A DNA stretch of 64,000 bases, from the NCBI GenBank assembly GCA_965240325.2, contig OZ251245.1:868001-932000 (forward strand). Reading direction: 5' to 3'. This document shows positions 2,848-31,785 of the stretch, piece by piece. The translations under genes and the position numbers were made by a program. This stretch comes from Rebecca billardiae RCC1528 (lineage: Eukaryota; Protista; Haptophyta). Each line of letters opens with the position of its first letter. The stretch's first letter is position 1. Under the pieces are notes generated by a model. It ran no database searches and was not told the DNA's origin. It was given only the letters and a program-made list of their open reading frames with translations.

Positions 2848-5403
2848 CTACAGCAGTGGCAGCGCTACGACCGCATCCGCGTGCGGCACAGGCGCTGCCG
2901 GCAGCGCCCCCCCGGGGGGCGGGCGGCGAGGCTGCGCGCCCGCGTCCGCCGACTCCGCGGCGCGCGAGACGACGAGGGGCATGACGTGGGCGACCCAGAC
3001 GTCCACGAACGCGCCCGCCCGCCCGCCGCTTGCCGCCGCCGCGGCCGCGACGGCCTCCGGCTGCTGATCGCGGCGCAGGCTGGGCGTTCGGCTGTGCCCG
3101 TCGCGCGCGCTCGTCGTCACCACCGAGAACGCGCCGCCGCCGCCGCCGCCTCCGAGCCGAGTGCCAGCGATGCGTGAGCCAATCAACAGCAGGGTGACGG
3201 CGCGCGCGCGCGCGGCGGGAGGGAACAGGGCGTGCGCGGCGGCGCTCCAGGGTCCCGCGGCGCGCACGACGAGCTCGGCGACCGCGCGCGCGCTCGGGCT
3301 GCACGCGTCGCCCTGCGCCAGCACCGCCTCCGCGCGCGTGAGCGGCGTCGGCGAGCCCAGGGGCCCCGCTGCGTCGGCCACCGCTCTGAGCGCGCGCGTG
3401 CGCGCGGCCGGCGCGTGCGGATCGGCACCCGCGCTGAGGAGTGCGGCGGCGCGCGCGGGCGTGAGGTGCTCGACGTGGTGCAGCGGCGTGAAGCCGTCCG
3501 TCTCGTCGAGCCAGCGCAGCAGCGACTCGTCCGCCGCCGAGTGCCTCGCCAGCTCGCGCGTCGCCTCGCCGGACGCGGCGCCATGGGCCACCAGCACGCG
3601 TGCCAAATCAGCATGGCCGCCGATGAGCGCGCCCGCAAGTGGCAGGAGCCCTCCCACGGAGGGCCGGTTGGGGTCGGCGCCGTGCGCGAGCAGCAGCGTC
3701 GCGCAGCGCACGTACCCGCGCTGGCACGCGCCGAGCAGCGGCGTCGCGCCGCCCGCCGCCGCGCGCCGGTTCGGATCGGCGCGCGCGCCGATCAGCGCGC
3801 GCGCCGCGCCCGCGTGACCCTCTGCCGCGGCGAGCAGCAGCGGCGTCGCGCCAAAGGCGTTGAGCGGGTCCGGGCCTGCGCCGGCGGCGAGCAGCGCGCG
3901 CACGACCGCCGCGTGGCCGCGCTGGCTCGCCAGGTGCAGCGCGCTCGCGCCGCTCAGCCGGTTCGGCGCGCGCACCGCCGCGCCGGCCTGCAGCAGCGCG
4001 CGCAGGGCCAGCATGGAGCCTGTCTCCGCCGCCATGTGTAAAGGCAGGGCTCCGGTGCGGGTGGGCGCGGCCGGGTCCGCGCGCGCGGCGAGGAGCAGCC
4101 GGACGCACGCGTCGTGCGCGCCGAGGCACGCGACGTGCAGCGCGCCCTCGCCGCGCACGCCGCCGTCCGCGCGCGGGTCCGCCCTCGCCCGCACGAGCGC
4201 CGCCACCGCGCCAGCATGGCCGCCGCGCGTCGCAGCGATCAGCGCGGTGCTGCCGTCGCGCGCGCGGAGCTCGGTGGCGGCGCGCGCGCCGAGCAGCAGC
4301 TGCACCGCGTCGGCGTGGCCCCGCGCGCTCGCGGCGAAGAGCGCGCTCACGCCCGCGCCCGTCTGCACGTCCAGCCGCGCGCCGAGCCCGAGCAGCGCGC
4401 GGCACACGTCCCCGTGCCCAGCGGCCGCGGCGGCCATGAGCGCTGTGCCTCCGGTGGAGCGCGCGCGCGCGTCGATCACCGCGCCGTGCGCGCCGAGCAG
4501 CGTGACGCACTCGGCGTGGCCGCACGCGCTCGCGCACCAGATGAGCGGCGCGCGGTGCTCCGCGCTCTCCACGCCCGTCTCGAGCCTCGCCACCGCGCTG
4601 CCGGCCGTCGAAGCGCGAACGCCCGCCGCGGCGGCAGCCGCCTCCGCCGCTGACGGGTCGGACGGCGGCGTGGCCGCGCGCTCGCGCGCGGGCGGCGCGC
4701 GCGCGTGGTGCGTGGGGATCTTGCCGTCGGGCGAGGCGCCGGCGAGCAGCAGCGCGCGCGCGATGTGCACATGCCCGCGCACGCACGCCTCGCCCAGCGC
4801 CGTCAGTCCGGACGCGGCCGCAGAGTCCGGCTCCGCTCCGTGCTGCAGTAAGACCTGGCAAGGGCCCAGGTGGCCCGCGGCCGCGGCGCGCACGAGGGGC
4901 GGCACGCCCGACGCGTCGCGCAGCTCGGCGCGCGCGCCCCCGCGCAGCAGCGCCACCACGCACCGCGTGCGGCCCATCTGGCTCGCCTCGTGCAGCGCCA
5001 GGCCGCCGTCCGGGTCGGCCGCCTGCGCAAGAAGCAGCTGCACGCAACCGTCGTGCCCCCCGCGCGCGGCGGCTCCGAGCGCGCGCGCCGAGCCCGCGTC
5101 CGCGCCGTGCGCGAGGAGGAGCTCGACGGCTGGCGTCGAGCCCGCACTGCACGCCGCGACCAGCGGCGTCTCGCCCGTCGGCCCCGGCTCGTCCACGGGC
5201 GCGCCGAGCGCGAGCAGCTGCTTGCACACGTCGGTGAGCCCGCGGCGCGCGGCGGTGCGCAGGGCGGCCGAGGCGGCGACGGCGGCCTCCGACGACGGCT
5301 TGGGGTTGCTCGGCGCCGCGCGCAGCTCACGTAGCACGCGCGCGCTCGCCGCGAGCTCGCGCGACTCGGAGGACGCGCGCTGTCGCGCTATGGGCGGGAG
5401 CAT
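2848..5403 (-). CDS. Multi-ankyrin-repeat protein
   Basis: 851-aa ORF with many G.TPL/ALH.AA..GH...V..LL..GAD repeats. Confidence 0.9.
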   Translation of the reverse strand: MLPPIARQRASSESRELAASARVLRELRAAPSNPKPSSEAAVAASAALRTAARRGLTDVCKQLLALGAPVDEPGPTGETPLVAACSAGSTPAVELLLAHGADAGSARALGAAARGGHDGCVQLLLAQAADPDGGLALHEASQMGRTRCVVALLRGGARAELRDASGVPPLVRAAAAGHLGPCQVLLQHGAEPDSAAASGLTALGEACVRGHVHIARALLLAGASPDGKIPTHHARAPPARERAATPPSDPSAAEAAAAAAGVRASTAGSAVARLETGVESAEHRAPLIWCASACGHAECVTLLGAHGAVIDARARSTGGTALMAAAAAGHGDVCRALLGLGARLDVQTGAGVSALFAASARGHADAVQLLLGARAATELRARDGSTALIAATRGGHAGAVAALVRARADPRADGGVRGEGALHVACLGAHDACVRLLLAARADPAAPTRTGALPLHMAAETGSMLALRALLQAGAAVRAPNRLSGASALHLASQRGHAAVVRALLAAGAGPDPLNAFGATPLLLAAAEGHAGAARALIGARADPNRRAAAGGATPLLGACQRGYVRCATLLLAHGADPNRPSVGGLLPLAGALIGGHADLARVLVAHGAASGEATRELARHSAADESLLRWLDETDGFTPLHHVEHLTPARAAALLSAGADPHAPAARTRALRAVADAAGPLGSPTPLTRAEAVLAQGDACSPSARAVAELVVRAAGPWSAAAHALFPPAARARAVTLLLIGSRIAGTRLGGGGGGGAFSVVTTSARDGHSRTPSLRRDQQPEAVAAAAAASGGRAGAFVDVWVAHVMPLVVSRAAESADAGAQPRRPPPGGALPAAPVPHADAVVALPLL

Positions 5404-11427: not shown

Positions 11428-13473
11428 CGCGCCGGGGCGCAGCCGTGCCGCGGCTCGGCGCGCGGCAGCCGCCGCGGGCGCCGCCGCCCAGCGCTCGGTG
11501 CAGCAGTCTCGAGACCTGCGCGGCGGATGCGGGCGCCAGCGCGGCCGAGGTCACCGCTGCCGCTGCGCTCGACCGAGCACGCGCGCCTGCTTCATGCTGC
11601 TTCAAGCGCATGCTGCGATGTTGCGTTCGGATGCTTTGCTCGCAGCGCACAGCGCTAGCGGCCCCCGATTACCTGCGCATGCTGCGCACCCATCTGCTCT
11701 GGCAGCGTCAGGACTCCATGCCGTGTCCGCGGTCGACTCGTCTCGGGCGGACCGCGGCCGGCCGGATGCGCAGACGCGAGACGTGCTGCCGCTGGCCTCC
11801 GTCTACGCGCAGCCTACGGTCTAGACTGACTAGTCACTCGCGCCGACTGGCGCTGATGGCGGTAGTATAACTAAACTGTGCGAGGCGGAGTCAGCGGACT
11901 ACGCGGTCATCGGCGCTGTCGGCGCTGTCGGCCCCGTGCCGGCCGATGGCGATGCCGAGCGTCCGCCGTCCGGTACCGAATCTATTTTAGTATTTACGTC
12001 ATCTAAATATACTACCGATCTATATATAAAAGTGATGCCGCATCATCAATAAACATCATTAACGACGATGATCATGATCATCGATCGTCATAAGATCAGA
12101 TATTATTATTCGTCATGATTTTATTATAAATAATAATAGTATCATATATATATATAGTATTATTCTGGTGAACACAGCTTTGAACAATTTTAATTCAGCC
12201 AGGGAGACCCAGCTCCGACCCCCTTTACTTGTTGTCACCTACTGCTGTCCAAAGTAATACCGGAGTAGGAATACGAACAATGGGGCCTCGAACGTTTTTT
12301 GATTAGGCACGCCTCGGGAATCGAGAACGCATGTCGTTACCTTTTTGAGCGCGCCTCATATGGACGTCGTTGCGATTCCCACCAATTTGTTGACGCTTTT
12401 CTACGACCATCCCCTCCTATTGAGAGTGCTTTCGCCGCCGCACCGCGTGCGCTACTGCGCTCGGCACACACAATTGATTGAGTATGACGAACGAGCTCAG
12501 CGCGCTGCTGCAGGAGGCGAAGGCCGCGCGCGACACGCAGAAAGAATGGCGCTCAGCCGGCGTGGCTCGACGACGCTGCCGGCACTCGCGCGCGCACACA
12601 CGTGCGCGACGAGGACGATCAGCTCCGCGGGCCTCCGCCGAACCCAGCGCCAGATGCCATCGTCGGCGTCGCGAGGTACTGCGCCGATCTGGCGGAGATC
12701 CAGCGGCACGTGGCGGCGATCAAGCAGCCGCAACCGCATCAGATGACGTGCACGAACGGCCTGATGGAGAACCTCGTACAACACGCCTACCATAAGCCAC
12801 CCGCTCGTCGACTTGCCCGACCACTACTCCGGCGCTGGCTCGTAATAATCAACGCGGGCCGCGGCCTTCGAGCCGTCACCCGCCGCCGCCCGCGGCGTGC
12901 GGTGCCATCACGGAGGTGCGTGCTCGTCGGCGCGAGCTGCAAAACACGGCATGCACACCGACGCGAGCCGCTCGTACCACGTCGTGCCCGACGGGCCGTG
13001 CTCAGCGACGGCTGCAAGTCTACTACGCTGTGCAGGTTGTGCCCTGCCTGCGCAGCTCGGCCCGCGCCTGCAGTCGCAGACCGGTGGGCCATCCGCGGTG
13101 CGTGCCGTTGCCGCGCCGTCGTGCCCGAGCGGTCGTGCGCAGCGACGACTGCATCGACGCACGCCTCGCCGTGCGCCTCGATGGGCCTAGTAGTAGCACT
13201 TGCAGAACCGCGGACGCGGTGGCGGTGCGGTGCCGCGCAGTGTCCGCGCCGCGCGCGCACGCGCCTGCGGCGCCTGCGGCGCGCCACTGGATTAGTCAAT
13301 ACCGTTAGTTAGTTAGTTAGTCAGCGCTGAACGGCCAACTCGTCCCATCGTCGTCGGGTCTGCCAGCCCTGGCAAGCTTCTCCGTCGCGTCCAAGACGCG
13401 CTGTGTTCGACCGCAGCCCCACCGCCGGGACACTAGGCCGCCAGGGCCCCCGCAGTTTTTATAATCATATTTC

Positions 13474-14983
13474 AAACTGTGCCCTGGCGGGCGGGGGTTC
13501 GGCGGGCCGTGCCAGTGCTGTCGCAATGTTTCCTCTGCGGGTTCGCGAGTTTTCACATTCGCTCGTGGCCGTGGGTGACGAACGGACAGTCCGAGGGCGA
13601 GGACCAGTGACACCTGAAGTTCTCCCAGGCGAGTGTACACGTCCGTGCGCATCGGCGAGGCCCACACCCACGAGGGAATGTGCAGCACGCGGGGCGGGTA
13701 GGGTAGCCCGTTGTTCCGCGCGAGCGCAGGTACGCGCTGTATGAGCCGCATCTCGCCCGCGATGGTGTAATCGAGCGCCTCAGTCGCCGCCGACAAAGCC
13801 GCCAGAGTATATCGTGTGCATGTCCTCCTTCCGCCAGCCGAGAGCGGTCGTCGCGAGGATGCTTGCCGACGTCCGCTCCGGGCATGATGGGCTCGGCGCA
13901 GGTCGCGCTGACGTCGTACAAGGCCGCCACGCTGAGTACGAGCGCGTTGACGTTCGCGCGCTCATCGCTCTTCGCCTCGTGCGACAGGTCTGGTGCCCGC
14001 GTGCTCGGCGGCACGAGGAGCTGTTGGTTGTGCGCGCGCGTTCACAGCGACAGCGTGTGCCACTCGCGATCGAGAGTGGGCACGAGCTGCTCGAGCAGGC
14101 ACACGAATCGCAGCGCATCCGTCACCGGCGTGACGACGTCTGCCTCGTCCCGCAGCGCCTGCGCCATGGACGAGGATGGTGCGTCGATGTTGCATGCTCG
14201 ACGTTTCATCTTTCTGCGGATGGCATCACGGGCTTGTCTGTGTCGCGCTGCGGCGAGGGTCGCCGACTCGCAAAGACGCAGTTGCTGCCACGGCGACAGA
14301 CCCGGGAGGTGCGTCCGCTGCGCGTCGTACGCCGTTGGCGCTGCGCTTCCGTCGCATTGGTCACCGTCGACGCCATGCACGCCGGACGTGGGCTTCGGCT
14401 GAGGGACCGCGAGCGACAGTCCGGTGCGCGGATTCCGGCGATCGAGTTCAGAAGGCGCGCCAATCTTGCGTCGCGTGCGATGGCGCTTCCCGCCCGCGAG
14501 ACACCTCGTGATGAGGGCCTTTCCGCACCGAGCCCGACGCGCGGCGGTGGATCGCGCGAGGCGGTTGTCGTGCGCAGCGCTCGATACTATGGCCCGTGCG
14601 AGCGCTCGACGTGCAAGTCGGGCGAGGACCGCCCCAGGCCGCACGATCTTGTCGACGCGCCGAGCGTACCTCCAAACGCGTCGACTTTGGCCCCCGTTCG
14701 ACCTGCACGCGAGACGACGAGGGCAGCAATCGCGAATCGGGCGAAACCCCCCCTCGGGAGTCCTCGCGCGATGTCCGCGCCGGCGTTGGATCTGGCGCGC
14801 GCAGCCCACGCGCTCCGCGCCATCGGGCACTTGTTTTCGGCCGAGCGTCCCCAGTGGGAGCTGCGAGGGCGCCCGGTGGTGAGCGAAGCGATTTTCTTTT
14901 CTTGGCGAGGCGGTTTTCTTTTTTCTTTTCTTTTTCTTATCTTTTCCCCGGGCACTACAAGGGGCGGACCTACGGCCCGCCAT
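13474..14983 (+). mobile_element. About 1.5-kb dispersed repeat, copy A (putative non-autonomous Helitron2/Helentron-like element)
   Basis: Reverse-complement homologue of 22965-24446. Short asymmetric IR (GTGCCCTGG at 13479, CCGGGCAC at 14948) followed by a terminal hairpin GGCGGACC-TAC-GGCCCGCC. Carries degenerate coding-like sequence. Confidence 0.7.
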
Positions 14984-15968
14984 ATCAGCAGATGATTCAG
15001 ATATGATTGTCGTGCTCATCATTGTCAGCGCGCCGCGCGGTCAGCGCCGAGAATCCATCACGCCTTCCCCATATTAACTTTCTTCATCATCATGACTCAT
15101 GGCCGCACCTCCTTCATCATGGCCTCCTGCGCACCCAACTCACAACTGCGCTCGCTCTATACGGCTTAAGCTACTCGGTCGTGTCTATTTGTTGGCGCGG
15201 CTCTTGATCACGTCATCAGCATCCCGAAACCTTCTCATTCGTCAAGCATGCAGCCAGCCCCGGCCAAGCTCATTATCGTCATACCCATAGTATGTTGGTC
15301 GCCAGGGTTGATGATGTGTGCACCGGTCGTAAACAATATCTTGAATTGATGTCGTATTATCTGGTCCTACGTATCACAACCAAAAAGTTTTCTGTATGAC
15401 GATACATAATTCACCTAGTTACCGCGTGCACAGCTCCAAGGATCCTTCTCAAGACCACCGAGCCGGGGGGTGGGCAAAGGCTAGGCGAAGGGGCGGTGCG
15501 TGGCCCGCATCGCGAGCGCCCCGGCGCGTGCGCGCGGTCAGCAGAGTTTGAGCGCACGGCCAGCGCCGCCCGCGCACGGCCAGCGCCGCCCGACGGCCCC
15601 TTAGCCAACGCTCATCGCTGGCACGCGCTGGCGCACGGGCGATGCAACAATGCTCAAGCCAGCACGCACCAGCGTGGTCTGGCGCCGGCACAAAAGGCAG
15701 TCGCGCGTGCAGCAAAACCGCAACCGCGGTGTGGACACCGCACGTCCGGTCGGGAGTGCAAGCGGGGAACCATCACCGCCTACGCTTCCAGGGGCGCACC
15801 CCACCGCGACGCGCACACGCCGCCGCCGATCCACGATGACGATGATTCATAACTCACCACTGCGCGTGACCCGGTGCGTGCCAATGCCTCGTGCCTCGAT
15901 CGACGCCGCCCCTGATCACTGATGCGCGGAGTGCGCAGGCCTTGCCCGTGCCCGTGCCAGCTCCTCCG

Positions 15969-18900
15969 ATGGCACCTCCCTCAAGTTCGCGCGTTGCCAC
16001 ACTCGTAGCAGTCGCTATTTTCTGGGCCTCCACCGCACCGTGCGCACAGGGCACGTTGCTCGCTGACGACCCTGTGTTCAGCGACTGCCTCGACAACAAG
16101 GCCACGTGCTCCTCACTGTGCGCGCGCGAGCTGATGCCGCACGCACCGCACTGGCAAGTGTGAGGCAGGCTCAGGCGGCACGGCGCGCGCAACCAGCTCC
16201 CACGAGTGCTCACTCACTCACCGCACGCTTGTCGTGCGTGGCCTCCATCACACCATGCAGGGACCTGCGCGAAAAGGCGCTCAGTGGCAGCATCCCGACG
16301 GAGGTGGGCGAACTGACGGCTCTTACAGACATGTGCGCGCGCTGCCGCGCACACTGCCGCTGCGTGCGATCGACACGGCTGCTGCTGCTGTGCATACGCG
16401 TGCGCGTGCGCGCAATCGCAACCTTCTCCTTGCACGTCGAGCCGCCGTGTGCCTGGCCGCCCAGGGTTGCGCGACGCATGCAGTGCGCTGAGTGAGCCCG
16501 CTCCCACACTGACGCCCGCCTGCGCGTGCGCATGTGGCCCTCCACGCCTCGCAGGTACCTCTACTCCAACTCGCTCGTTGGCACCATCCCGACAGAGGTG
16601 GGCGAGCTGACGGCTCTTACGGAAATGTGCGCGCGCTGCCGCGCACACACACTGCCGCTTTGTGTGATCGACACCGCCGCTGCTGTTGTGCAAACGCGTG
16701 TGCGTGCACGCCATCGCGAGCTGCGGCTTGCGCGTCAAGCTGCCGTGTGCCTGGCCACCCAGGGTTGCGCGACGCATGCAGAGCGCTGAGCCCGCCCCCG
16801 CACTGACTGACGCCCGCCTGCGCGTGCGGACGTGGCCCTCCACGCCTCGCAGGTACCTCTACTCCAACTCGCTCGTTGGTACCATCCCGACGGAGGTGGG
16901 CGAGCTGACTGCTCTTACGGAAATGTGCGCGCGCTGCCGCGCACACTGCCGCTGCGTGTGATGATGGACACCGCTGCTGCTGCTGTGCAAACGCGTGCGC
17001 GTGCACGCCATTGCTGCCTTCTGCTTGCATGTCGAGCTATCGTGTGCCTGGCCGCCCAGGGATGCTCGTTCATGCAGTGCGCTGAACCAGCTCCCATACT
17101 GACGCCAGCCTGCCCGTGCGCACCTGGCCTTCCACGCCGTGCAGGTACCTCACCGACAACTCGCTCATTGGCACCATCCCGACTGAGGCAGGCGAACTGA
17201 CGGCTCTTATGGACATGTGCGCGCACTGCCGCGCACACTGCCGCTGCGTGCGATCGACACCGCTGCTGCTGCTGTGCCAACGCGTGCGCGTGCGCGCCAT
17301 CGCGAGCTGCAGCTTGCGCGTCAAGCTAGAGTGTGCCGCGCCGCCCAGGGTTGCTCGACCATGCAGTGCGCGGAACCAGCTCCCATACTGACGCCCGCCT
17401 GCGCGTGCGCACGTGGCCCTCCACGCCTTGCAGGGCCCTCTTCTCCAACTCGCTCGTTGGCACCATCCCGACGGAGGTGGGCGGCATGACGGCTCTTACG
17501 ATCATGTGCGCGCGCTGCCGCGCACACTGCCGCTTTGCGTGCGATCGACACCGCTGCTGCTGCTGTGCAAACGCGTGTGCGTGCACGCCATCGCGAGCTG
17601 CGGCCTGCGCTTCAAGCTGCCGTGTGCCTGGCCACCCAGGGTTGCGCGACACATGCAGAGCGCTGAACCCGCTCCCACACTGACACCCGCCTGCGCGTGC
17701 GCAAGTGGCCCTCCACGCCGTGCAGGTACCTCAACGAAAACTCGCTCGTTGGCACCATCCCGACTGCGGTGGGCGACCTGACGGCTCTTACGAAAATGTG
17801 CGCGCGCTGCCGCGCACACACACTGCCGCTTTGTGTGATCGACACCGCCGCTGCTGTTGTGCAAACGCGTGTGCGTGCACGCCATCGCGAGCTGCGGCTT
17901 GCGCTTCAAGCTGCCGTGTGCCTGGCCACCCAGGGTTGCGCTGCACATGCAGAGCGCTGAGCCAGCTCCCACACTGACACCCGCCTGCGCGTGCGCAAGT
18001 GGCCCTCCACGCCGTGCAGGTACCTCAACGACAACTCGCTCGTTGGCACCATCCCGACGGCGGTGGGCGACCTGACCGCTCTTACGGAAATGTGCGCGCG
18101 CTGCCGCGCACACACACTGCCGCTTTGTGTGATCGACACCGCCGCTGCTGTGCAGACGCGTCGCACGCCATCGCGAGCTCTTGCTTGCGCGTCGAACTGC
18201 CGTTTACCGCGCCGCCCAGGGTTGCTCGACACATGCAGAGCGCTGAGCCAGTTCACACACTGACGCCCGCCTGCGCGTGCGGACTTGGCCCTCCACGCCT
18301 TGCAGGCGCCTCTTCACCACCACGCTCGGTGGCACCATCCCGACGGAGGTGGGCGACCTGACTGCTCTTGACGCAATGTGCGCGCGCTGCCGCGCAGGCG
18401 CGCACAGTTCCGCTGCATTCGATCGACACCGCCGCTGCTGTGCAGACGCGTCGCACGCAATCGCGAGCTGTGGCTTGCGCGTCAGACTGCCGTGTGCCGC
18501 GCCGCCCAGGGTTGCTCGGCGCATGCAGAGCGCCGAGCCAATTCCCACACTGACGCCCGCCTGCGCGTGCGCACGTGGCTCTCCACGCCGTGCAGGTACC
18601 TCTACGAAAACTCGCTCTCTGGCACCATCCCGACGGAGGTGGGCGGCATGACGGCTCTTGCGATCATGTGCGCGCGTTGCCGCGCACACTGCCGCTGCGT
18701 GCGATCGACACCGCTGCTGCTGCTGTGCAAGCGCGTGCGCGTGCGCGCAATCGCGAGCTGAGGCTTGCGCGTCAAGCTGCCGTGTGCCGCGCCGCCCAGG
18801 GTTGCTCGACGCATGCAGAGCGCTGAGCCCCCTCCCACACTGACGCCCGCCTGCGCGTGCGCACGTGGCCCTCCACGCTGTGCAGGTTCCTCTACGACAA

Positions 18901-20308
18901 CTCGCTTTCTGGCACAGTCCCGACGGATGTGGGCAGCATGACGGCTCTTGCAACCATGTGCGCGAGCTGCCGCGCACACTGCCGCTGCGTGCGATCGACA
19001 CCTCTGCTGCTGCTGTGCAAACGCGTGCGCGTGCGCGCAGGGTTGCTCGACGCATGCAGAGCGCTGAGCCCGCTCCCACGCTCCCGCCCGCCTGCGCGTG
19101 CGCACGTGGCCCTCCACGCCGTGCAGGTACCTCAACGACAACTCGCTCGTTGCTGGCACCATCCCGACGGAGGTGGGCGGCATGACGGCTCTTGCAACCA
19201 TGTGCGCGCGCTGCCGCGCACACTGCCGCTGATGAAATCGAGATACCTCTGCTACCGGCTGCTGTGCAACTGCGTGCGCGTGCGCGCGAGCGCAAGCTAC
19301 TGCTTGCTTCTCGCGCATGCACGAGGCCAGTCAGCAGCCACACGTGTGGAGTTGGTTGGGAGAGCAGATGCTACCAGGCCTGCCAGCGAGGATGGCCCCG
19401 CGCGAGGCAGAAGGCTCACTCGCCTGCAACGTATGTCTGCCCGACGTGTGTTGCGTGTGTCCTCCCTCTGATCTGTTGTGGCTGCAGGGGTGTTGCAGGC
19501 ACGAGCATGTGGGGCGGCATCCATGGCTACACAGCGGTAACTCCGGCTGAGCTCCCAGACTTCCCACCGCCCTCACCGCCTCCGTCGCCGCCGCCCTCGC
19601 CGCCGCCGTCGTCGCCGCCTCCCTCGCCGCCGCCCTCGCCGCCGCCCTCGCCGCCGCCCTCGCCGCCGCCCTCGCCGCCTCCTTCGCTGCCGCCCTCGCC
19701 GCCGCCGTCGCCGCCTCAGTCGCCGCCGCCCTCGCCGCCGCCGCCGCCGCCCTCACCGCCACCGCTGGCCATCTGTGGCGCCACTTGCTTCTTTGTGGTA
19801 TGCGCAGCTCTGCCAGCGTTGCTGCGTTGCCGGGCGTCCGCCTGGTACCGCCTGTGCACTCTCACCAGCACCGGGCGATAGCGACCATATGCTGTGGCGG
19901 GCGCGCATTGTGCGCTCTCAACACACCCGCGCCCATCATCCACTTTGACGCGCCCCGCTGACCACAATGCCACTGCCTGCCTGCCTTCGTGTGCCCTGCT
20001 GCTGCGGCGTGCGCCGGCGCCCGCCTCACCACCAGGCTGCCCTCTCGGGGCGCCGGCTGATCAAGTACGCGCTGTGCAGAATGCAAGGTGGCTGCGTGGA
20101 GCAGCCATTGTCGCTCCTCGGCAGCCGTCAGCTAGCAGCGTTGGTGATGGGCGACGAAGAGGACGGCGTTGAGGGCACGATGTCCACGGCTGCTGAAGCT
20201 GCTGCCGCGACGGCATGGATTGCGCTGACGGCGGCCGCTGTCGTGTCCGCCGTGGTCATTCGGAGCCGCCAGCGCAACCCAGGGCTGGGCTGGCGTTACA
20301 CTCCGTGA
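15969..20308 (+). CDS. LRR receptor-like type-I membrane protein, about 508 aa; exons 15969-16117, 16261-16332, 16555-16626, 16853-16924, 17145-17216, 17434-17505, 17726-17797, 18020-18091, 18306-18377, 18596-18667, 18886-18957, 19127-19201, 19488-19797, 20036-20308
   Basis: All introns are GT-AG and the spliced frame is open (1527 nt). Signal peptide, Cys cap (DCLDNKATCSSL), 11 plant-type LRRs (xLxxNSLxGTIPTEVGxLTALxxM), (SPPP)n stalk, Cys segment, TM helix and short tail. The last two exons are less certain. Confidence 0.85.
16230..19230 (+). repeat. Tandem array of 11 exon+intron units, period about 290 bp
   Basis: Recurrent ...CTGACGCCCGCCTGCGCGTGCGCACGTGGCCCTCCACGCCGTGCAG|exon|GTGCGCGCGCTGCCGCGCACAC... 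Confidence 0.95.
19564..19764 (+). repeat. 12-bp coding minisatellite encoding (SPPP)n extensin-like stalk
   Basis: (CCCTCGCCGCCG)n. Confidence 0.9.
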
Positions 20309-21276
20309 CGTCACATAACTACGGCATGGCCTCCGATTGCTTTCCCGCTCGCCGCGGCACTGCCAGGTCCCAGTGCGCCCTCCGACCATCAAGCGCCTGG
20401 TGGACTACCTTTGTGGTACCACCATGACCACGACGCTCACCCGGCTCAAGTATAGGTGGCGGTGTTGTCCGACTGTCCGAGACTGGGCACCAGTCCTCGG
20501 TGACACCGTCGTCCCATGCACGAGTCGCTGGTAAGTTTATACGCTTCTACCCGCACGCGTACCGGCGGGGGCGGCGGGGGCACGATCTGGCGCACTATCT
20601 TGGCCAGTCCAGAGCCCCAAACCCTGCGGGTTTGGTGGGGCTGCCGACTGCATCCATTCGTGACTTGTGACAGATCCGTCCGCTCGCCATCAGGGGCGGT
20701 CGACTTAGTTAGCCCCGCCTGGTCCGGGTCGCTTCCGGTGGACCCGTATCGCCCACACGCGCGGTAGGACGAAGCACCAGCGCTATGCTTCGTCTTCTGA
20801 GTCACGTCCCATGGCAGTCTGCTAACGACATTATAACTATATATATATATATATATATAAAGGACGACGACATATATTACTATAGCTCTGCCTGACCTTG
20901 CATGGGTTGGAAGGCGCGGACGCATTCTATGTCGGTCTGCTGCGCACTCTGCAACATTGACCGCTGACGCTTGCTGCCGTTGCACATACCACGTCGTTAA
21001 ATATATGACCGCGTTCCGCGGTCCTTCCGTAGAACCAACGCAGTTATTCGGGGCCCGCGGTGCACCCTCCGTCGGCTGCTGTCTCAGTCGGACATGTGCG
21101 TAACAGTTCGTTCGCCTGAGCTGCCGCCCACCGGGCCGGCTGGCCGAGCAGCGGACTGTCGTCGCCGGCGGGCCGCCGCGCGGGGAAGCGGCCGCCGCGG
21201 GGCGGCGCGCGCGCGCAGGGCAGGGCGAGAGGCGCCGCGCGGCGCGGGCCGGCGCGTGCGCGCGTGCGGGCGCACC

Positions 21277-21926
21277 TGCTTGAGGTGCTCGCGCGGCGCC
21301 ATTCGCTCGACGACGGGCCGCTGGTCGCTCACTCAGCCGGCGCGCCTCGTGCCGGCAGACGGAGCGAGAGCGCGCGCCACGCAGTGCTGCCCCGGCCTGC
21401 GCTGCCGGCAGCCGCGCACCGAGACCGAGCGGAGCTCGGGGTGGAACGAGGCGAGCGGCGCGTCGCGCCTGCCGTCGCGCGTGCGCGCCTGCTCCACCGC
21501 GCCGCCGTGCTCGCCCGCCGCCTCCTCCGCCGCGTCGGCCTCGAAGACGGCTGCGGCGGCCCGAGTCAGCGGCTGACGGGCTGAGCCCGTGCGCGCTGGC
21601 ACCCGGCGCCGATCGCCTCGACGGCCCTCTGCTCCACAGCTGGCTGCTCGAGCTGCTGCACGGGGCGTCGCGACGAGGGCGCCGCGCGCGCCCAGCGCGT
21701 CCGTCGCCGCGTCGCGCAGCGCGTCGAGCTCGGCGCCGCGCTTTGCCAGCTCGGCGCCCAACGCCTCCGCACTCGCAGTTGGCATGCGCGAGCGCCAGCG
21801 CGCGCGTTCCGACACGGTGCTGCTGCTGGACTGCTCCGTCGCGGCGGATGTGGCGAGCGAGACGATGGAAGGGCACGCGAGCAGCGCCGCCAGTAGGCAC
21901 TCAGTAGCGCGCCGAGGTAGTCTCAC
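21277..21926 (-). other. Possible spliced hypothetical gene or gene fragment
   Basis: Signal-like LLAALLACPSIVSLA and coding-like segments ending at GTGCGC donors (e.g. ...REHLKQ|GTGCGC at about 21276). No recognisable domain. Confidence 0.3.
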
Positions 21927-22028
21927 GTGGTGCCTAGGTTGCGCGTGCCCAGCAGGCTGAGCATGCCGGCCTGGCGCGCTGCTCGGCTGCTTGGAGGCCG
22001 AGCGAGTGCATCGGAGTGGAGGGCCGCT

Positions 22029-22143
22029 CCGAATCGCGCTGGCCCGCGCGCGGCACGCCTGCGCCTGCCGCCGAATCGCGCTGGTCGCCCGTGCGCGGCA
22101 CGCCTGCGCCTGCCGCCGAATCGCGCTGGCCCGCGCGCGGCGC
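22029..22143. repeat. About 43-bp tandem repeat, about 2.7 copies
   Basis: CCGAATCGCGCTGGCCCGCGCGCGGCACGCCTGCGCCTGCCG units. Confidence 0.8.
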
Positions 22144-22964
22144 GCAGGCGCCTGCAGCGCCCCCGCCTCGGCTTTCGTCGTCAGAGTTCAGACTGCTGCG
22201 ACGCATATGGGGGTACTCTTATTCTATGATTTGACTGTACTCGGCCAAGGTTGACGAATTTTCGCGCTCGCGCCACGCGAGCGCAAAGGTTCGTTCGCGT
22301 CGTTAGTATTCTTCGTCAACCCGATCCGATCTACACCTTTACCATATGTTTTGAAACGTGCACACTTGGTTAAGGCGTGATTACAGTTTACTAAGCATAA
22401 GAGACGCACACAGCTCAGGCATGATGCGAGATCCAGCAAATATCAGCGCGCTCGGTACGCCGACATATGCAGGTTGAAACTCAGTATATGACGACCCATG
22501 CACATGCACTTTGTCAAAACAATACGGCCGCCCTTGGACCGGCGACCAAGTTTTCGAGGCGTCGATGAGACGATGACTAAACTTTACTGACAATGTGACG
22601 CCCACCGGTTAGTTATTGACTCACGCCCGGGCGCGGCTATTTCGTCAATCGCGTCTTGCGGTAATAGACAGCAATGTACGGTGTACCCCTCGAAAATTAG
22701 CGAAAATTCACCCTCATCCAAAGCCCTCAAAATCGTCCCCCGCCCCCTTTTCTAGCAGCTTTAATTGATCAAAAGATCTTTTTGACAACGTAGTGAGGGC
22801 CCCCGGCGGGGCTCCACGCTACGCGCTCCGCCCTGCACCGCGGGCCATTATAATTCATTCACACACTGTATATATATTTTTAACCGCGGACGTGGCAGCA
22901 TCGCGGACAAGCGTCAGGCTCAGAGTGCAACAGACACATAGATAATATTTTCTTTTTCGGCGCA

Positions 22965-24446
22965 ATGGCGGGCCGTAGGTCCGCCCCTTGTAGTGCCCTG
23001 GAAAATATCTGGATGAACAATTCCCACGTCTATCCCACTTGCAATTCCCACTGGGGACGCTATATCAAGGGTTCCCGGATGGCGCGGAGCGCGTGGGCGG
23101 CGCGCGCCAGATCCAACGCCGGCGTGGACATCGCGCGGTGATTCCCGAGACGAGTTTTCGCCCGATTCGCGATTGCTGCCCTCGTCGTCTCGCGTGCAGG
23201 TCGAACGGGGGCCTACTAGTCGACTCGTTTGGAGGTACGCTCGGCGCGTCGACATGATCGTGCGACCTGTGACGGTCCTCGCCCGACTTGCACGTCGAGC
23301 GCTCGCACAGGCCATAATATCAAGTGCTGCGCACGACAACCACCTCGCGCGATCCACCGCCGCGCGTCGGGCTCGGTGCGGAAAGGCCCTCATCACGAGG
23401 TGTCTCGCGGGCGGGAAGCGCCATCGCACGCGACGCAAGATTGGCGCGCCTTCTGAACTCGATCGCCGGAATCCGCGCACCGGACTGTCGCTCGCGGTCC
23501 CTCAGCCGAAGCCCACGTCCGGCGTGCATGGCGTCCACGGTGACCAATGCGACGGAAGCGCAGCGCCAACGGCGTACGACGCGCAGCGGACGCACCTCCG
23601 GGGTCTGTCGCCGTGGCAGCAACCGTGTCTTTGCGAATTGGCGACCCTCGCCGCAGCGCGACACAGACAAGCCCGTGATGCCATCCGCAGAGAGATGAAA
23701 CGTCGAGCATGCAACATCGCCGCGCCATCCTCGTCCATGGCGCAGGCGCTGCGGGACGAGGCGGAAGTCGTCACGCCGGTGACGGATGCGCTGCGATTCG
23801 TGTGCCCGCGTGACCAGCTCGTGCCCACTCTCGATCGCGAGTGGCACACGCTGTCGCTGTGCGCGCGCGCGCGCACAACCAACAGCTCCTCGTGCCGCCG
23901 AGCACGCGGGCGCCAGACCTGTCGAAGATGCGAAGAGCGACGACTGCGTGAACGTCAACGCGCTCGTGCTCAGCGTGGCGGCCGTGTACGATGCCAACGC
24001 GACCTGCGCCGAGCCCATCATGCCCGGAGCGGACATCGGCAAGCGTCCTCGCGACGACCGCTCTCGGCTGGCGGCAGGAGGACATGCACACGATCTACTC
24101 TGGCGGCTTCGTCGGCGGCGAGGCGCTCGATTACGCCATCGCGGTCGAGATGCGGCACATACAGCGCGTACCTGCGTTCGCGCGGAGCATCCGGCTACCC
24201 GCCCCGCCCCGCGTGCTGCACATTCCCTCGTGGGTGTGGGCCTCGCTGATGATGCGCACGCCGCAGACGTGTACACGAGTGTGACGTGAGTGCGAGAACT
24301 TCACAGGTGTCACTGGTCCGAAGCCTGTCCGGCACCCACGGCCACGAGCGAATGCTGTGGAATAAAGACGCGAATAACCCGCAGAGGAAACATTGCGACA
24401 GCACTGGCACGGCCCGCCGACCCCCCCGCCCGCCAGGGCACAGTTT
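22965..24446 (-). mobile_element. About 1.5-kb dispersed repeat, copy B (inverted relative to 13474-14983)
   Basis: Same termini and hairpin as copy A. Perfect 9-bp IR GTGCCCTGG (22993) / CCAGGGCAC (24433). Matching peptides in the ORF track (14424..14882 + and 22920..23480 -). Confidence 0.75.
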
Positions 24447-25679
24447 TATTGATTTCCTGGGGCGGACTGACAGTTCCGCACGCATGCCGGCATGGTCAGC
24501 AAACACTAACTGAAAAGTCGGGACTCGGGTAGTCGGCACAGTGTTAGCGACAGCTGACACACTGTCAGCTGACGATGAGGCGCTGAAGGCCGGAGCGCTG
24601 GGCATGCAGCCCCACCGCGGAGCCACAATCCGCCTGATCATGATGAATTCCTGACGAGTCACCGCGGTGACGATAAGAACCGTGCCATATGCGCTGTTAG
24701 TTATAGTGAGTCGTCACACTCACTCAGTCGAAGTGTGCCGTTGACTGAGCAGTGTCTCTGCTGCAGTACAGTAGTACAGTGACACACGGTCACGAGTGTT
24801 AGACCCGTTGCACGCGTGAGCGCCGAAAAAACGACACTTTGGCAGTGATAGTCATCACCGTCGCCGCATCGTGGGCATGCCGCTGCCGCCGCCGGCGGCG
24901 GCAGCGGGAGCGTGGCAGCAGATCTACCACCTTCCGCGTTACGCGCTGCGTCGTGCGCGCCAGGTGGCAGGTTTCCCAGGTCCGCCGCGCGGAAGGCAGC
25001 GTGAGCGGTCGGCGAGCGCACGGAGGTGAGAAGTAAGCGCGCATCGTGAGAGCTTAAGCAGCTTGCCCACGCGCTTCACGAAGGCGGTGCGGTTGCGTGC
25101 GCACGCCTTCTGTACCCGTACACGCGATCAAAGCGTGAGCCACTCCCTAGGTCTTGCCTGCGCATCGCGGGCCGCGCCTCGTCTCCTGAATCCTCGTTCA
25201 CGAGGACAGCACGTGTATCCGTGTACGCGCTCGCGGCCGATGGCGGCTCCCCGCGTCGAGAGCCGTTTGGCTGGAGCCGCATCCAAGGGCATATATCGTC
25301 ACGGCCCCACCCGATGCTGACGCTGAGGTGGCGTGCTTGCCCAAGGTAGCCGCATTGGCTGATCTCTCTGCCTTTGGGCAACCCTTTGCAACCGCGCCGG
25401 CTCACGCTGCCAGCGCGCGCGCGGCGTGGCTTCGTGGTGGACACCTGCCCTGGGTTTTGTCGTTCGTTCTCAGCGACGGTTGGGTCGATTGACATGCGGA
25501 TTGGATTGGTGCATTGCGAATCGGCTTCGCAATGCACCATTGCGCTCGGATCGGCGCGGACGTCAGCCATGCGGCAGCGCGAGCGACAAAACCGCGAGAT
25601 TTCATACGCTTGTCGTTTTTTCATACGCTCACGGTTACTCACCCGTGCAACGGGTCGTTACCAGTACTCTATACTTATA

Positions 25680-27632
25680 TAGGTGGGTCCCTCCCAACTG
25701 GGGCGATATTCTGGCGCACTCAGAATGACGTCCTAGATTTTGTCTCTCACCCAGAATCGACGCTATAAATGCGTCCCATCGGGGCGGAGCAAAAGTTTCG
25801 ACCTCAAAACCTACTCCGCGTGCCGTCGCGCGGCCGAGCGCGCGCGCGCCGCGCCAGTAGTGTCACATAGAGATTTTGCGAAGCGTTACTTCATGGTTAT
25901 GGTGGCTAGATGGCGACATGCGATCGGAATTACTTATTGACAACCGTTGACACCCGACCGAACCATTTTATGGAGCAAAGAGTGGGGCTCTATGCTGTGC
26001 GCTGATACCTCCAACAAACTACAGCAAGATCGAGCATATTACCCACTTCATATATAGCCACTTACCCGTATATAGTATGAGTGTTACCCACTTTATATTG
26101 ACCGTGGATGCGGTTCACTATATATTCAAATTCGTTCCGATATGTGGGTACGTTTGTTGGGTCATCGAATAGGCGCCGAGCGACGCGGACACAGGCAACC
26201 CGGGCCGCAACCGGACTGCCTGCGAGTGGCAGTGTTTGTGGCGGGCTGCGTGCCGAGGCACACACCATCGCCCGCCACCGAGCATGCCACCGTCGTCACA
26301 CGGGAGCCCTCCGCCGTCGAGGCTGGACTATCAGCCAACGCCACCGCCGGAGCTTGCCGCGTTCGGCGGCTTCCGTGCTCGTACTCCGCGTGTCACCGGT
26401 CGTCGTATGTCCCACCCGCGTGAGGCCGCCACCAGTCCATGACTACCGCAGCTGCAGCCCGTGCCGCCGACGATGCCTCCTACCATCTTCTCGCCAGGCA
26501 GCAATACGATAGGTTCACCGACGCTGCTGCTAGGCTGAGAGCACTCAGCCAGTTGGCCGGCGAGACGTCAGATGGTTGAGCTGCTGGCCTAGCCATCACG
26601 TTGCGGCTTCCGCTCGCTCAAGTACACCCAACGCGACGACGAGAACGTGCCGGGCAATCATCAGGCATGCGTCTGAGGGGTCTACTACGCCTAGCCGTAG
26701 AGTTGCTGAGTACGAGTCTTCGCAGACCACAAGCGGAACGAGTGGGACCACCCAATGGCAGGAGCAACAGCGTGGGGTGGCACCCGCGCCTGTCAACGCG
26801 ACCGCGTTCTGTCAAGAATGGACCCATATCCTGCGACCACCCTCGAGCACCGCATACTATGCCCACACTCGGCATAGGGAAGGATCGCTGAGCGCCTGCT
26901 GCCGCTGTCAAAGGCCCTGCTGATCTTCCTGGCGCTGGATCGTGCACACGGATGGCAAGTCGGCGTGCTCGCCGCACATCGCGGCGGCTTCTCAGCATCC
27001 CAAGTCCTCAGTGCACCCATCCTAGGCCTGCTGGTCGATGATTGGTACCAACCCCCACCAAACACGCCCTCTCGGAAGTCGCCAATCGCTTACATGGCTC
27101 CCCGAGAGCCCGGGGCTGGCTGTCGTGCGTTCTCACGAGCAGCTTGCGCACAGCCCAAATGTCACCTTCACGGTGTGTAGAGCTGCTCAAGACGGCGGGG
27201 ACGTCAAGAGCATGCCCATGCCTGATGGTGGCCCATGCCTCCCGTCACCTGACCCGCCTGTAGCGAAAAGTGGCCCTGCTCGAAGGCACGGCTCGAACAC
27301 CCGCCGATCGATTCAAGTTGTCTGTACGCGTCTAGCCGGGCGAGAGTCAAACATGCGGGCACGTGCCAGGCGGGGGATGTGTGACCACGGATCCCATCCG
27401 TGAGCACGCGCAAAGCGCTGGAGCGCGCGATAGGTGTTGGCTGTGGTCTACCCGACACACGGCGGCTCGGTCGCGCTGGAGAGGCGCTCCGACATCGTCG
27501 GGAGCGTTCAGATCGGACCTCGGCCGGCGGCCCGGCGATTTTCCCGAGCCGCGCCCCGCGCGAAAAGAAATCAGGCCAGAAAACCCGGTAAATGTTTAAA
27601 AGACCGCTGGAAAATCGCCAGGGACCCACCTA
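25680..27632. mobile_element. Non-autonomous TIR DNA element (TAGGTGGGTCCCT...AGGGACCCACCTA)
   Basis: 13-bp TIR flanked by TATA. Internal 25803-26153 is homologous to 59070-59434 of a related element. Confidence 0.7.
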
Positions 27633-27787
27633 TATACTACTCACTCTCACTCACTGAGACTCTCAGTGACTGCAGCAGACTGCAGAGACACTGCTGCTCA
27701 GTCAACGTACGGCACAGCTGGCCTCATAGACCGTCGTCACGGTCGCCCCACTCGCAGGTGTCTCACGACGATACACAGCGTCATGCC

Positions 27788-28423
27788 TCACGCCGGTGGG
27801 AAGAGCGCGCGCAGCTCCTCGGCCTCGCGCGCCATCGCCTCGGCGGTGCGGTCCTTGCGGTCCTCATCCGCGGGCACCTCGAGCTTGGGTCGCGCGTCGT
27901 GGTGCTCCAGCGCGTCGTACACGTCGTCGTTGCGCGCGAAGTCCGCCGGCTTGCGCGGAAGGATGTGCACGTGCACGTGCGGCACGGTCTGCCCCGCGTC
28001 GCGCCCGTCCTGCACGGCAATATTGGCGGCGGTGGCGCCGTAGTGGCCCTCCAGACGCCTCGCGATCAGCCGGACCGAGCGCCAGAGGTCGCACAGCTCC
28101 TCGTCGGTGAGGTCGTCGAGGCGTGGGACGACGCGCTGTGGAACCACCAGCACGTGCCCGGGCACGATGGGCCTGAGGTTCACCAGCGCCAACGTGAGCT
28201 TTGACGGCGAGGCGAAGAAGATCTGCGACTGCGGGATCTCGAATCGACCAAACTGGCAGCCAGCCGGCAGCGGGCCCGCACCGTGCGCGGACATGAGCGC
28301 GAGCGGACGGCGGATAGATGTCGCACGGACGCTCTTGCACAGCGCCGTGGCGACGAGCATGCCCCCCGCGATGAGCGCGCTTGTCAACACCCTCACGTCC
28401 GGCCTGGCGAACATCCCGCGCAT
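27788..28423 (-). CDS. FHIT: FHIT-like HIT hydrolase (bis(5'-adenosyl)-triphosphatase)
   Basis: FGRFEI, ALVNLRPIVPGHVLVVP, QDGRDAGQTVPHVHVHILPRKPADF..NDDVY, RT.EAMA.EA..LR. Confidence 0.92.
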   Translation of the reverse strand: MRGMFARPDVRVLTSALIAGGMLVATALCKSVRATSIRRPLALMSAHGAGPLPAGCQFGRFEIPQSQIFFASPSKLTLALVNLRPIVPGHVLVVPQRVVPRLDDLTDEELCDLWRSVRLIARRLEGHYGATAANIAVQDGRDAGQTVPHVHVHILPRKPADFARNDDVYDALEHHDARPKLEVPADEDRKDRTAEAMAREAEELRALFPPA

Positions 28424-30105: not shown

Positions 30106-31785
30106 ATGGCGGCGAGATCGCGAGCTGGCATGGCGAGCCATCGGCCGTACCTGCTGATCCTCGCGGCGCACACGGCGCTCAAGCTGCTGCTCGTGCCCGC
30201 ATACCACAGCACCGACTTCGAGGTACACCGCAACTGGCTCTCGCTCACGTACACGCAGCCGCTCTCCCGCTGGTACTCGGACACCGCCTCGCCGTGGACG
30301 CTCGATTACCCTCCGCTCTTCGCGTGGTTTGAGCGCGCACTCGCGCAGCTCGCGCCGCTCTTCGACGCGCGCATGCTCGAGCGCGACGCGCTCGGCTACG
30401 CCTCCGATGCGACCGTCCTGTTCCAGCGCCTCACCGTCGTCGCCTCCGACCTCGTCCTCTTCGTCGCGGTTCGCGAGCTGCTCGGGGGCGTGTGGCGGCC
30501 CGTGCCCGCTCGCGCGCGCGACGCGCTCGTGGACGTGCTGCCCTTCGCGCTGGTGTTCTGCGACGTGGGTCTGCTGCTCGTCGACCACGTGCACTTCCAG
30601 TACAACGGCCTTCTCCTCGGCGTGCTCCTGCTCGCGTGCGCCGCGGCCGAGCACTCGCAGCACGCGCTCGCGGCCCTCTGGTTCGCCCTGCTGCTGCAGC
30701 TCAAGCAGCTGTACCTGACGCTGGCGCCGCTCTTCTTCGTGTACCTGCTCCGCGTGCACTGCTTCGCACCCGCGCCCGCGCGCGAGTTCCTGCCGCGCCG
30801 CTTCGCCGAGCTGGGCGCGGTCGTCGCCGGCGTGACGGCGGCATCGATCGCGCCGCTCGCGGCGGCGGGCGGCGGCGCGGCCGTTCGCGCGCTGCTCGCC
30901 CGCCTCTTCCCCTTCGGCGAGCGCGGGCTGACGCACACGTACTGGGCGCCGAACGTGTGGGCGCTCTACCTCGCCGCCGACTGCGCCGCCGTGATGTGCG
31001 CGCGCGCGGGCGCGCGCGTCGGCGTGCGCCTTCCCGGCGCGCGCTGGGCGGCCGCGGCCGCGGCGGGCGCGCGCTGCGCCAACACCGCCGGCGCCGTGGC
31101 TGGTGAGGCGCCAGTGGTGCTTCCGGCGGTGCCGCCTGCGGCGACGGCGGCGCTGGTGCTCGCGCTGAGCGCGCCGGCGCTCCGCGGCGTGTGGTCCCAC
31201 CCGCGGCCGCACGTCTTCCGCCCCGCGCTCGCGAGCGTCGCGCTGGGCTCGTGCCTCGGCGGCTGGCACGTGCACGAGAAGGCCTTCCTGGCACCGGTGC
31301 TCCTGCTGGGGACGATGGCGCTGCGCTCCGGCGCGGACGCGCGCGCGTTCGGGATGCTCGCCGCGCCGGTGTACTACGCGGTGCTCCCGCTGCTCTTCGA
31401 GCCCGACGAGTACCCGCTGCGCACCCTCGCGCTGTGCACGTACGCCCTCGGCTTCGCGCTCGCGAGCACGCTCGTGTCCGCGCGCGCGCGCCCGCCGTTC
31501 AGCGGCGAGGGGGCGCTCCTGGCAAGCTTCACCCGAATGGACCGGGCTTACCTCCTCGGCTTCGCGCCGCTCGAGCTGTACACGAGCTTCGGCCACGCGG
31601 TGCTCGCGGGCACGGCGCTGCCGTTCCTCCCGCTCATGCTCACGTCGGTGTACTGCGCACTCGGCGTGCTGCGCGCAGCCGCGCTCGCGCACGGCCGGCT
31701 GGAGGACGCGCTGGACGGCGCGCGCGAGGCAGCGCACGCAGAGTCGGTGGACAGCGGCGCGGGCGGGCTGCGCCGCGGCGGCTGA
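30106..31785 (+). CDS. ALG8: Dolichyl-P-Glc alpha-1,3-glucosyltransferase ALG8
   Basis: YHSTDFEVHRNWL, WTLDYPPLFAWFE, DHVHFQYNG, RLFPF..RGLTHTYWAPNVWALY, GWHVHEKA. Confidence 0.94.
   Translation: MAARSRAGMASHRPYLLILAAHTALKLLLVPAYHSTDFEVHRNWLSLTYTQPLSRWYSDTASPWTLDYPPLFAWFERALAQLAPLFDARMLERDALGYASDATVLFQRLTVVASDLVLFVAVRELLGGVWRPVPARARDALVDVLPFALVFCDVGLLLVDHVHFQYNGLLLGVLLLACAAAEHSQHALAALWFALLLQLKQLYLTLAPLFFVYLLRVHCFAPAPAREFLPRRFAELGAVVAGVTAASIAPLAAAGGGAAVRALLARLFPFGERGLTHTYWAPNVWALYLAADCAAVMCARAGARVGVRLPGARWAAAAAAGARCANTAGAVAGEAPVVLPAVPPAATAALVLALSAPALRGVWSHPRPHVFRPALASVALGSCLGGWHVHEKAFLAPVLLLGTMALRSGADARAFGMLAAPVYYAVLPLLFEPDEYPLRTLALCTYALGFALASTLVSARARPPFSGEGALLASFTRMDRAYLLGFAPLELYTSFGHAVLAGTALPFLPLMLTSVYCALGVLRAAALAHGRLEDALDGAREAAHAESVDSGAGGLRRGG

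Follow-up and report, generated by a model that had tools for sequence, protein, structure and literature searches.

A 64,000-nucleotide stretch of the genome of the haptophyte Rebecca billardiae RCC1528 (GenBank assembly GCA_965240325.2, contig OZ251245.1, positions 868,001 to 932,000 of the forward strand; hereafter the window, numbered from its first nucleotide) contains, at 15969–20308, a gene in which 11 consecutive exons each encode one leucine-rich repeat (LRR). We propose as the likely reading that the locus is a germline-encoded and apparently intact gene for a type-I surface LRR protein, with an array that was generated by tandem duplication and later reshuffled, a ligand-binding face under diversifying selection, and constitutive splicing. 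In the predicted protein, a signal peptide would be followed by a curved solenoid of 11 plant-type 24-residue LRRs, then by a Ser-Pro3 repeat stalk about 70 residues long, and finally by one anchor helix with a very short tail. The stalk, extensin-like and probably rod-shaped, would hold the LRR head off the cell surface, where it could bind an external ligand in recognition or adhesion; because the protein is without a signalling domain, it would need a partner for signalling, as plant receptor-like proteins do. We suggest that the array grew by repeated tandem duplication of an exon-plus-intron unit of about 290 bp, that its units continue to be reshuffled by unequal crossing-over and gene conversion, and that selection favours amino-acid change at five solvent-exposed positions of the strand motif xxLxLxx while preserving frame and splice sites along with the Leu/Asn/Gly/Pro skeleton. 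All 11 LRR exons would be spliced constitutively, the most likely outcome because the introns are short and uniform and the splice sites identical.

The one-LRR-per-exon design has so far been known from intracellular ROCO proteins of brown algae, and the present gene would extend it to an extracellular, stalk-mounted surface protein of a haptophyte. Given the variation on its ligand face, the gene is a candidate for a role in the alga's interactions with viruses, bacteria, grazers or mates, for which we know of almost no receptors in this algal group. The gene escapes calling based on open reading frames (ORFs), and it offers a simple test case for isoform diversity from exon-cassette LRR arrays.

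Anatomy of the exon array and the protein ends

The LRR exons were defined by a regular-expression scan for CAG|G(N69–72)AT|GTGCGCG, which gives exactly 11 matches at 16261–19201. Ten are 72 nucleotides (nt) and one is 75 nt long, as an initial annotation of this DNA had described, and the unit peptides that it listed agree exactly with the translations of all 11. Every LRR exon is flanked by ..CAG on its 5′ side and GTGCGCG on its 3′ side, and all 11 are read in phase 2-2 (1 + 69 + 2 nt), opening on the third base of one codon and closing on the first two bases of its successor; the codon restored at each junction is AT|G, except for CT|G after exon 1, in line with the joins given previously. 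The LRR exons contain no stop codon. Tandem Repeats Finder describes the region 16278–19038 as a repeat with a period of 290 bp (9.5 copies, 85% matches, score 3578), and a 24-nt core of the exon occurs in 11 copies in the window compared with none in 100 shuffles. The gene is composed as follows.

15969–16117, + strand: exon 1, 149 nt; start codon, signal-peptide-like segment and short two-Cys region, ending on CT|G
16118–16260, + strand: intron 0, 143 nt, GT..AG; array boundary
16261–16332, + strand: LRR exon 1, 72 nt; degenerate first repeat, DLREKALSGSIPTEVGELTALTD
16555–16626, + strand: LRR exon 2, 72 nt
16853–16924, + strand: LRR exon 3, 72 nt; peptide identical to that of LRR exon 2
17145–17216, + strand: LRR exon 4, 72 nt
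17434–17505, + strand: LRR exon 5, 72 nt
17726–17797, + strand: LRR exon 6, 72 nt
18020–18091, + strand: LRR exon 7, 72 nt
18306–18377, + strand: LRR exon 8, 72 nt; most divergent unit, with Thr in place of Asn
18596–18667, + strand: LRR exon 9, 72 nt
18886–18957, + strand: LRR exon 10, 72 nt
19127–19201, + strand: LRR exon 11, 75 nt; one additional in-frame Ala codon, the sole indel among the exons
Within 16333–19126, + strand: ten repeat introns between the LRR exons, 169–226 nt each, mutually homologous
19202–19487, + strand: intron 11, 286 nt; 3′ end of the array
19488–19797, + strand: stalk exon; 25 unique residues, about 17 Ser-Pro3 repeats and the onset of a hydrophobic segment, LAICGATCFFV
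19798–20035, + strand: putative last intron (model A), 238 nt, GT..AG
20036–20308, + strand: putative last exon (model A), 90 residues; membrane helix AATAWIALTAAAVVSAVVI, short basic tail and stop

The repeat introns begin with GTGCGCG and end with GCAG, and about 45 nt upstream of the acceptor they carry a conserved branch-point-like motif, ACTGAC. All introns of the gene keep GT and AG at their ends. Homology to the repeat introns extends into both flanking introns: intron 0 corresponds in its 3′ part to the same part of the repeat introns (nhmmer E = 2.5e-14, intron profile positions 68–218), and intron 11 matches them over its first approximately 100 nt, the remainder being unique. Because each end of the array thus carries part of the same intron, the duplicated unit of about 290 bp corresponds to one exon plus one intron. 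Retention of an intron would introduce an in-frame stop in 10 of the 12 cases, and in the other two the intron length is not a multiple of three. Antisense ORFs over the array (up to 379 residues) have no Pfam family match, and we take them to be chance ORFs of GC-rich DNA.

The start codon is the first in-frame ATG after an upstream stop, and hydropathy gives a signal-like hydrophobic peak at residues 9–27. Exon 1 had been described as encoding a signal peptide and a Cys cap; the signal-like segment and two Cys residues are there, but the second term was generous, the exon having no match to Pfam LRRNT or to another recognised cap family. Beyond the array, the linker GVAGTSMWGGIHGYTAVTPAELPDF lacks Cys, and the 3′ end can be modelled in two ways. 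In model A, position 19797 is joined to 20036, which yields a product of exactly 508 residues ending in the helix AATAWIALTAAAVVSAVVI and a basic tail. In model B, reading continues from 19798 onward to a stop with its last base at 19881, which yields 445 residues ending in the helix LAICGATCFFVVCAALPAL and a basic tail beginning RCR. The hydropathy peak of the membrane helix lies at residues 475–493 in model A or 408–426 in model B, with a tail of 15–19 residues. The last exon of model A has a coding-like GC content by codon position (0.69/0.58/0.76), which slightly prefers it over the tail of model B; it matches no Pfam family and no relative in a protein atlas search. A tblastn comparison with an RTX-like gene, made to test for a common juxtamembrane module, reached only E = 0.2 over an Ala-rich, low-complexity stretch, and the match was discarded as support for this exon. 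The spliced 508-residue protein announced by the initial annotation is therefore what its joins produce, but its last intron and exon are less secure, as the shorter alternative also ends in a good membrane helix. Both models predict the same layout, namely a signal peptide, an LRR head, a Pro-rich stalk, a single anchor helix and a very short tail, so that the (SPPP)n stalk and membrane anchor placed after the array hold up in either case.

Repeat class, unit variation and recombination

Joined, the exons encode a perfectly periodic 24-residue LRR domain. In the usual register, the unit consensus is LTALTxMYLxxNSLVGTIPTEVGx, which fits the plant-specific motif LxxLxxLxLxxNxLxGxIPxxLGx. A search of the PDB with the unit profile returned only ectodomains of plant LRR receptor kinases (MIK2, RGFR, GSO1, FLS2, SERK, HAESA, BRI1 and ERL), down to E = 9e-17; the single 23-residue exon peptides, too short for Pfam models, gave no match at E ≤ 10. 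The spliced protein was assembled from the window sequence and aligned locally to fetched proteins, giving alignments of 253–282 residues with 0–3 gaps and 41–50% identity overall. Its alignment to P0340, an intronless bacterial LRR protein, spans 263 residues at 50% identity with one gap of a single residue (E = 3e-82); with P0126, a transcript-derived protist receptor-like protein, it is 49% identical over 253 residues without gaps, and with the Ectocarpus ROCO protein P0339 it is 41% identical over 282 residues. In the alignments to all three, the junction codon sits on a conserved hydrophobic position.

Against 1.84 billion representative proteins, the unit profile matched 31,743, the top ones being giant bacterial LRR proteins with Pfam LRR_14, LRR_8 and LRR_1. 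The best-scoring bacterial matches (P0001–P0150, L003) are 1,000–7,800 residues long with up to 71 repeats, in many cases together with PKD or fn3 domains in one fusion protein; 24-residue LRRs of plant type with GxIPxE[IV]GxLTxL are, judging by these matches, very common in uncultured bacteria. The product of the gene itself, or a near-identical one, was absent from the protein collections at 335–1066 residues when searched with a profile from the exon peptides and the 609-residue relative P0126. A protein search with the in-frame exon-plus-intron ORF gave no match, and ORFs from within and next to the locus, looked up by exact sequence, had no protein on record.

P0126 is a EukProt transcript (c20209_g1, 609 residues) with 11 units of the same type (GSIPTEVGKLTSLTxW), in which Trp replaces the junction Met; its LRRs are followed by an ectodomain of no known kind, a single membrane helix and some 170 residues of cytoplasmic domain. 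Its four Trinity ‘isoforms’ were considered as cassette variants and rejected, as they are merely N-terminal truncations. Two contigs that a metagenome scan had picked up through the 24-nt core, L001 (Ga0314696_10017309) and L002 (Ga0314693_10012351), were likewise discarded as relatives, the core match being due to chance and the encoded LRR protein about 30% identical; they are mRNA-like environmental contigs, one beginning with a poly-A complement, and encode an intronless secreted LRR protein.

Across the 11 units, 9 of the 24 positions are invariant and 3 more nearly so. Amino-acid diversity is highest at unit positions 23, 24, 2, 4 and 5, which are the five x of xxLxLxx, and this set ranks 11th among the 42,504 possible sets of five positions. 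In solved LRR structures, these x positions line the concave ligand-binding sheet. The exon junction falls inside the β-strand, so each binding strand is built from two exons, with face positions 23 and 24 before the junction and 2, 4 and 5 after it. Divergence between units is higher in exons (0.176) than in introns (0.115, a mean pairwise difference of 11.5%), with synonymous divergence at about the intron level, and the exon excess is nonsynonymous change at the face codons. Nonsynonymous (dN) and synonymous (dS) divergence, estimated from few and non-independent paralogous sites and hence indicative only, are as follows.

Five face codons: dN 0.79, dS 0.32, dN/dS 2.5
Remaining codons: dN 0.10, dS 0.14, dN/dS 0.75

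Indels are distributed just as unevenly, with 11 events in intron columns, 9 of them of frame-breaking length, and a single event of exactly 3 nt in the exons.

The units do not share one history. Among informative site pairs, 42% are incompatible, and a homoplasy (PHI-type) test gave 0 of 2,000 permutations. Units 3 and 7 have upstream introns that agree completely in the 5′ third, but in the 3′ third of that intron and in its exon unit 3 is closest to unit 2; between LRR exons 2 and 3, the only differences are three synonymous bases. The array is best described as a mosaic, the likely product of unequal exchange or gene conversion in which the breakpoints lay within introns, and the combined pattern speaks for diversification in the germline through tandem duplication, gene conversion and positive selection.

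Weighing of alternative explanations

Several points weigh against the interpretation of the locus as an intact, selected and constitutively spliced receptor gene. Even the basic splicing of the array exons is something that we infer from the genomic letters, and the 3′ end is not certain, given two competing models of 508 and 445 residues. GC content at third codon positions (GC3) is 0.79 in the LRR exons compared with 0.94 in two housekeeping genes of the window (ALG8 and adh_short), which may fit low expression or a young gene and, equally, relaxed constraint. The signal of purifying selection is modest, with stop-free LRR exons expected at a probability of about 8% under random substitution, an only mildly improbable outcome (P ~0.08), and with a dN/dS of 0.75 outside the face codons. 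The GC3, stop-codon and dN/dS figures, together with the absence of the gene product from the protein collections searched, would fit a silent or decaying array, that is, a recent minisatellite-like expansion in an unexpressed or nearly unexpressed gene whose ‘diversifying’ pattern reflects relaxed constraint. We regard this as decidedly unlikely: nine structural positions are invariant in 11 of 11 units while the variation falls on exactly the five ligand-face positions (the 11th-ranked set), frame-breaking indels number zero in exons and nine in introns, all GT and AG sites and the branch-point-like motif are intact, and relaxed constraint would not surpass the intron rate sixfold at chosen codons. 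A rather unlikely alternative is that the gene is expressed but encodes a structural or adhesive protein of the wall or coat, in which the Ser-Pro3 rod would be glycosylated and sit within the cell covering, with an endogenous partner as the target of the LRR head. The combination of an LRR head with an extensin-like Ser-Pro repeat parallels the layout of plant LRX proteins and fits such a role, as does the lack of a signalling domain, but the predicted membrane helix is a feature that LRX proteins lack, and a surplus of amino-acid change on the ligand face would more usually be seen in proteins tracking changing external ligands.

The initial annotation went further and saw in the array a candidate combinatorial system for a variable recognition receptor. 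What stands of this is a fast-evolving, modular surface LRR protein, as seen in the mosaic units and the excess at face sites, with symmetric exons that could be added, dropped or swapped in frame; for an operating combinatorial system we found no support. In the form proposed for brown-algal ROCO genes, cells would skip different subsets of LRR exons and so produce many variants with hybrid β-strands at the new junctions. Skips would indeed stay in frame, since all exons are in phase 2-2 and donors and acceptors are near-identical; the variable face residues span the junction, such that each new join would make a new strand; and multiple LRR-exon splice variants are reported for Ectocarpus ROCO genes (PMC11378527). 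Symmetric phase and identical splice sites, however, follow automatically from tandem duplication, the short, uniform introns (169–226 nt) favour pairing across the intron and hence constitutive inclusion, and an inverted-repeat search of 15900–20400 for docking sequences returned only imperfect, GC-rich pairs of 14–25 nt, with no unique site that pairs with all repeat introns. Combinatorial splicing is thus, in our estimation, unlikely. Somatic diversification of the DNA, in the manner of the lamprey variable lymphocyte receptors (VLRs), would have units copied, deleted or converted in vegetative cells to give clonally different receptors. The mosaic structure of the units and the 290-bp array at 85–95% identity, a good substrate for unequal exchange, are compatible with such a process, and somatic recombination was raised for Ectocarpus by Zambounis et al. 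(PMC3341825). Ordinary meiotic or mitotic exchange over evolutionary time explains the mosaic equally well, though, and in contrast to the unassembled VLR locus this germline gene is already whole and in frame. Orphan cassettes, for which the initial annotation had suggested a search, did not appear either, as nhmmer with the exon profile recovered from the 64-kb window only the 11 exons, all on the + strand, with no orphan, partial or inverted cassettes. We consider somatic diversification extremely improbable. The broader idea that the one-LRR-per-exon arrays of this haptophyte are a real diversity generator, producing cell-specific or clone-specific heads by regulated or stochastic exon skipping or by mitotic exchange of units, with hybrid β-strands wherever exons meet anew, is in our view very unlikely; if true, it would constitute a unicellular counterpart of receptor diversification of the Dscam or VLR type, evolved independently of the brown-algal arrays. 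Overall, nothing that we found gives positive support to antibody-like or Dscam-like diversification, and a germline gene with constitutively spliced cassettes is the reading that we carry into the comparisons below.

Genomic surroundings and comparison with known systems

GC content in the window ranges from 58 to 80%, and the LRR gene lies in a segment (12001–28000) at 0.61–0.69 compared with 0.70–0.80 in the flanks; the genome of Diacronema lutheri (Pavlovales) has 73% GC (PMC8379373). Close downstream of the LRR gene, in very GC-rich surroundings, is an (AT)n microsatellite (20838–20860), followed at 22029–22155 by a 45-bp tandem repeat (3 copies, 87% matches). An intronless ALG8 gene occupies 30106–31785; its best named relative is from Pavlovales sp. 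CCMP2436 (56% identity), other sequences reach 56–58% and Prymnesium parvum 47%, which makes a haptophyte in or near Pavlovales the most likely placement of the genome. Contig 5894 of Logan assembly ERR14847148 (L004) carries the adh_short–ALG8 segment as genomic DNA, 100% identical at the protein level, and apparently comes from the same organism. Further coding capacity includes an uninterrupted 1,323-residue ORF with DRMBL and metallo-β-lactamase domains, of the SNM1/Artemis-type DNA repair nuclease family (32609–36580, + strand), an 851-residue, ATG-started ORF made almost throughout of ankyrin repeats (2848–5403, − strand; Ank_2, E = 2e-91) and, in a eukaryotic GC-rich context, a 770-residue ORF with RTX calcium-binding nonapeptide repeats (46834–49146, − strand; Pfam HemolysinCabind, E = 2e-7).

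The layout of the protein had been likened to lamprey VLRs and to plant receptor-like proteins (RLPs) and LRX proteins. With the VLRs of lamprey and hagfish, the likeness is one of protein layout alone (signal peptide, cap, LRR modules, Pro/Thr-rich stalk and membrane attachment), and the analogy goes no further. VLR genes are incomplete in the germline, and a cytidine-deaminase-dependent copy-choice process completes them in somatic cells from donor cassettes on their flanks; here, the germline gene is complete, the 64-kb window contains no donor cassettes and the LRRs are plant-type 24-mers. Dscam, in which one exon is chosen per cluster through pairing of docking and selector RNA, shares with the present gene tandemly duplicated exons of the same phase that encode one binding module each, but no docking–selector complementarity was found here, and an LRR solenoid requires many repeats at once.

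Plant SERK genes encode a signal peptide, LRRs, a Ser-Pro-rich hinge and a membrane helix, with domains tending to occupy separate exons (PMC3061892). Both the LRR class and the domain order are shared with SERK proteins and RLPs, and the protein resembles RLPs in being without a kinase: by prediction it has the full RLP arrangement of a signal peptide, extracellular LRRs, a single helix and a kinase-free tail of 15–19 residues. It differs from both in that no LRRNT_2 cap or leucine zipper is recognised, the Ser-Pro3 stalk is longer, the tail is very short, and the 11 repeats, near-identical and separated by homologous introns, are very young. Like LRX proteins, it has its LRR domain at the N-terminus and an extensin-like Ser-Pro(n) repeat behind it, which upholds that part of the parallel, but the repeat is Ser-Pro3 rather than Ser-Pro4, no Cys-rich linker is recognised, a membrane helix is present and nothing points to an LRX-type wall in this alga.

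The closest counterpart in gene structure is found in brown algae. The ROCO and LRR-only genes of Ectocarpus and Saccharina carry one plant-like 24-residue LRR (GxIP) per symmetric 72-nt exon, in tandem, and these exons show shuffling and duplication, multiple splice variants and, at four sites of the concave face, positive selection (Zambounis et al. 2012, PMC3341825; Teng et al. 2024, PMC11378527); dead or inverted LRR cassettes lie in the introns of Ectocarpus ROCO genes (PMC3341825). The features common to these type I LRR exon arrays and the present one are single LRRs on symmetric 72-nt exons, their tandem order and the excess of change at concave-face positions, so that the earlier parallel with ROCO genes is sound in these respects. 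Here, however, the product is predicted to be extracellular, there is no ROC-COR GTPase, the introns are free of dead or inverted cassettes and the lineage is a haptophyte one. The parallel also fails at the introns. The Ectocarpus ROCO locus L005, read directly, has exons of 2 + 69 + 1 nt separated by long introns that interrupt the Gly codon of LxG|xIP behind its first base (phase 1), whereas here, with introns of about 220 nt, the break falls behind the second base of a Met or Leu codon inside the β-strand (phase 2). This difference in intron position and phase suggests that the haptophyte array arose independently of the brown-algal arrays and, by extension, that the modular one-LRR-per-exon design has arisen more than once.

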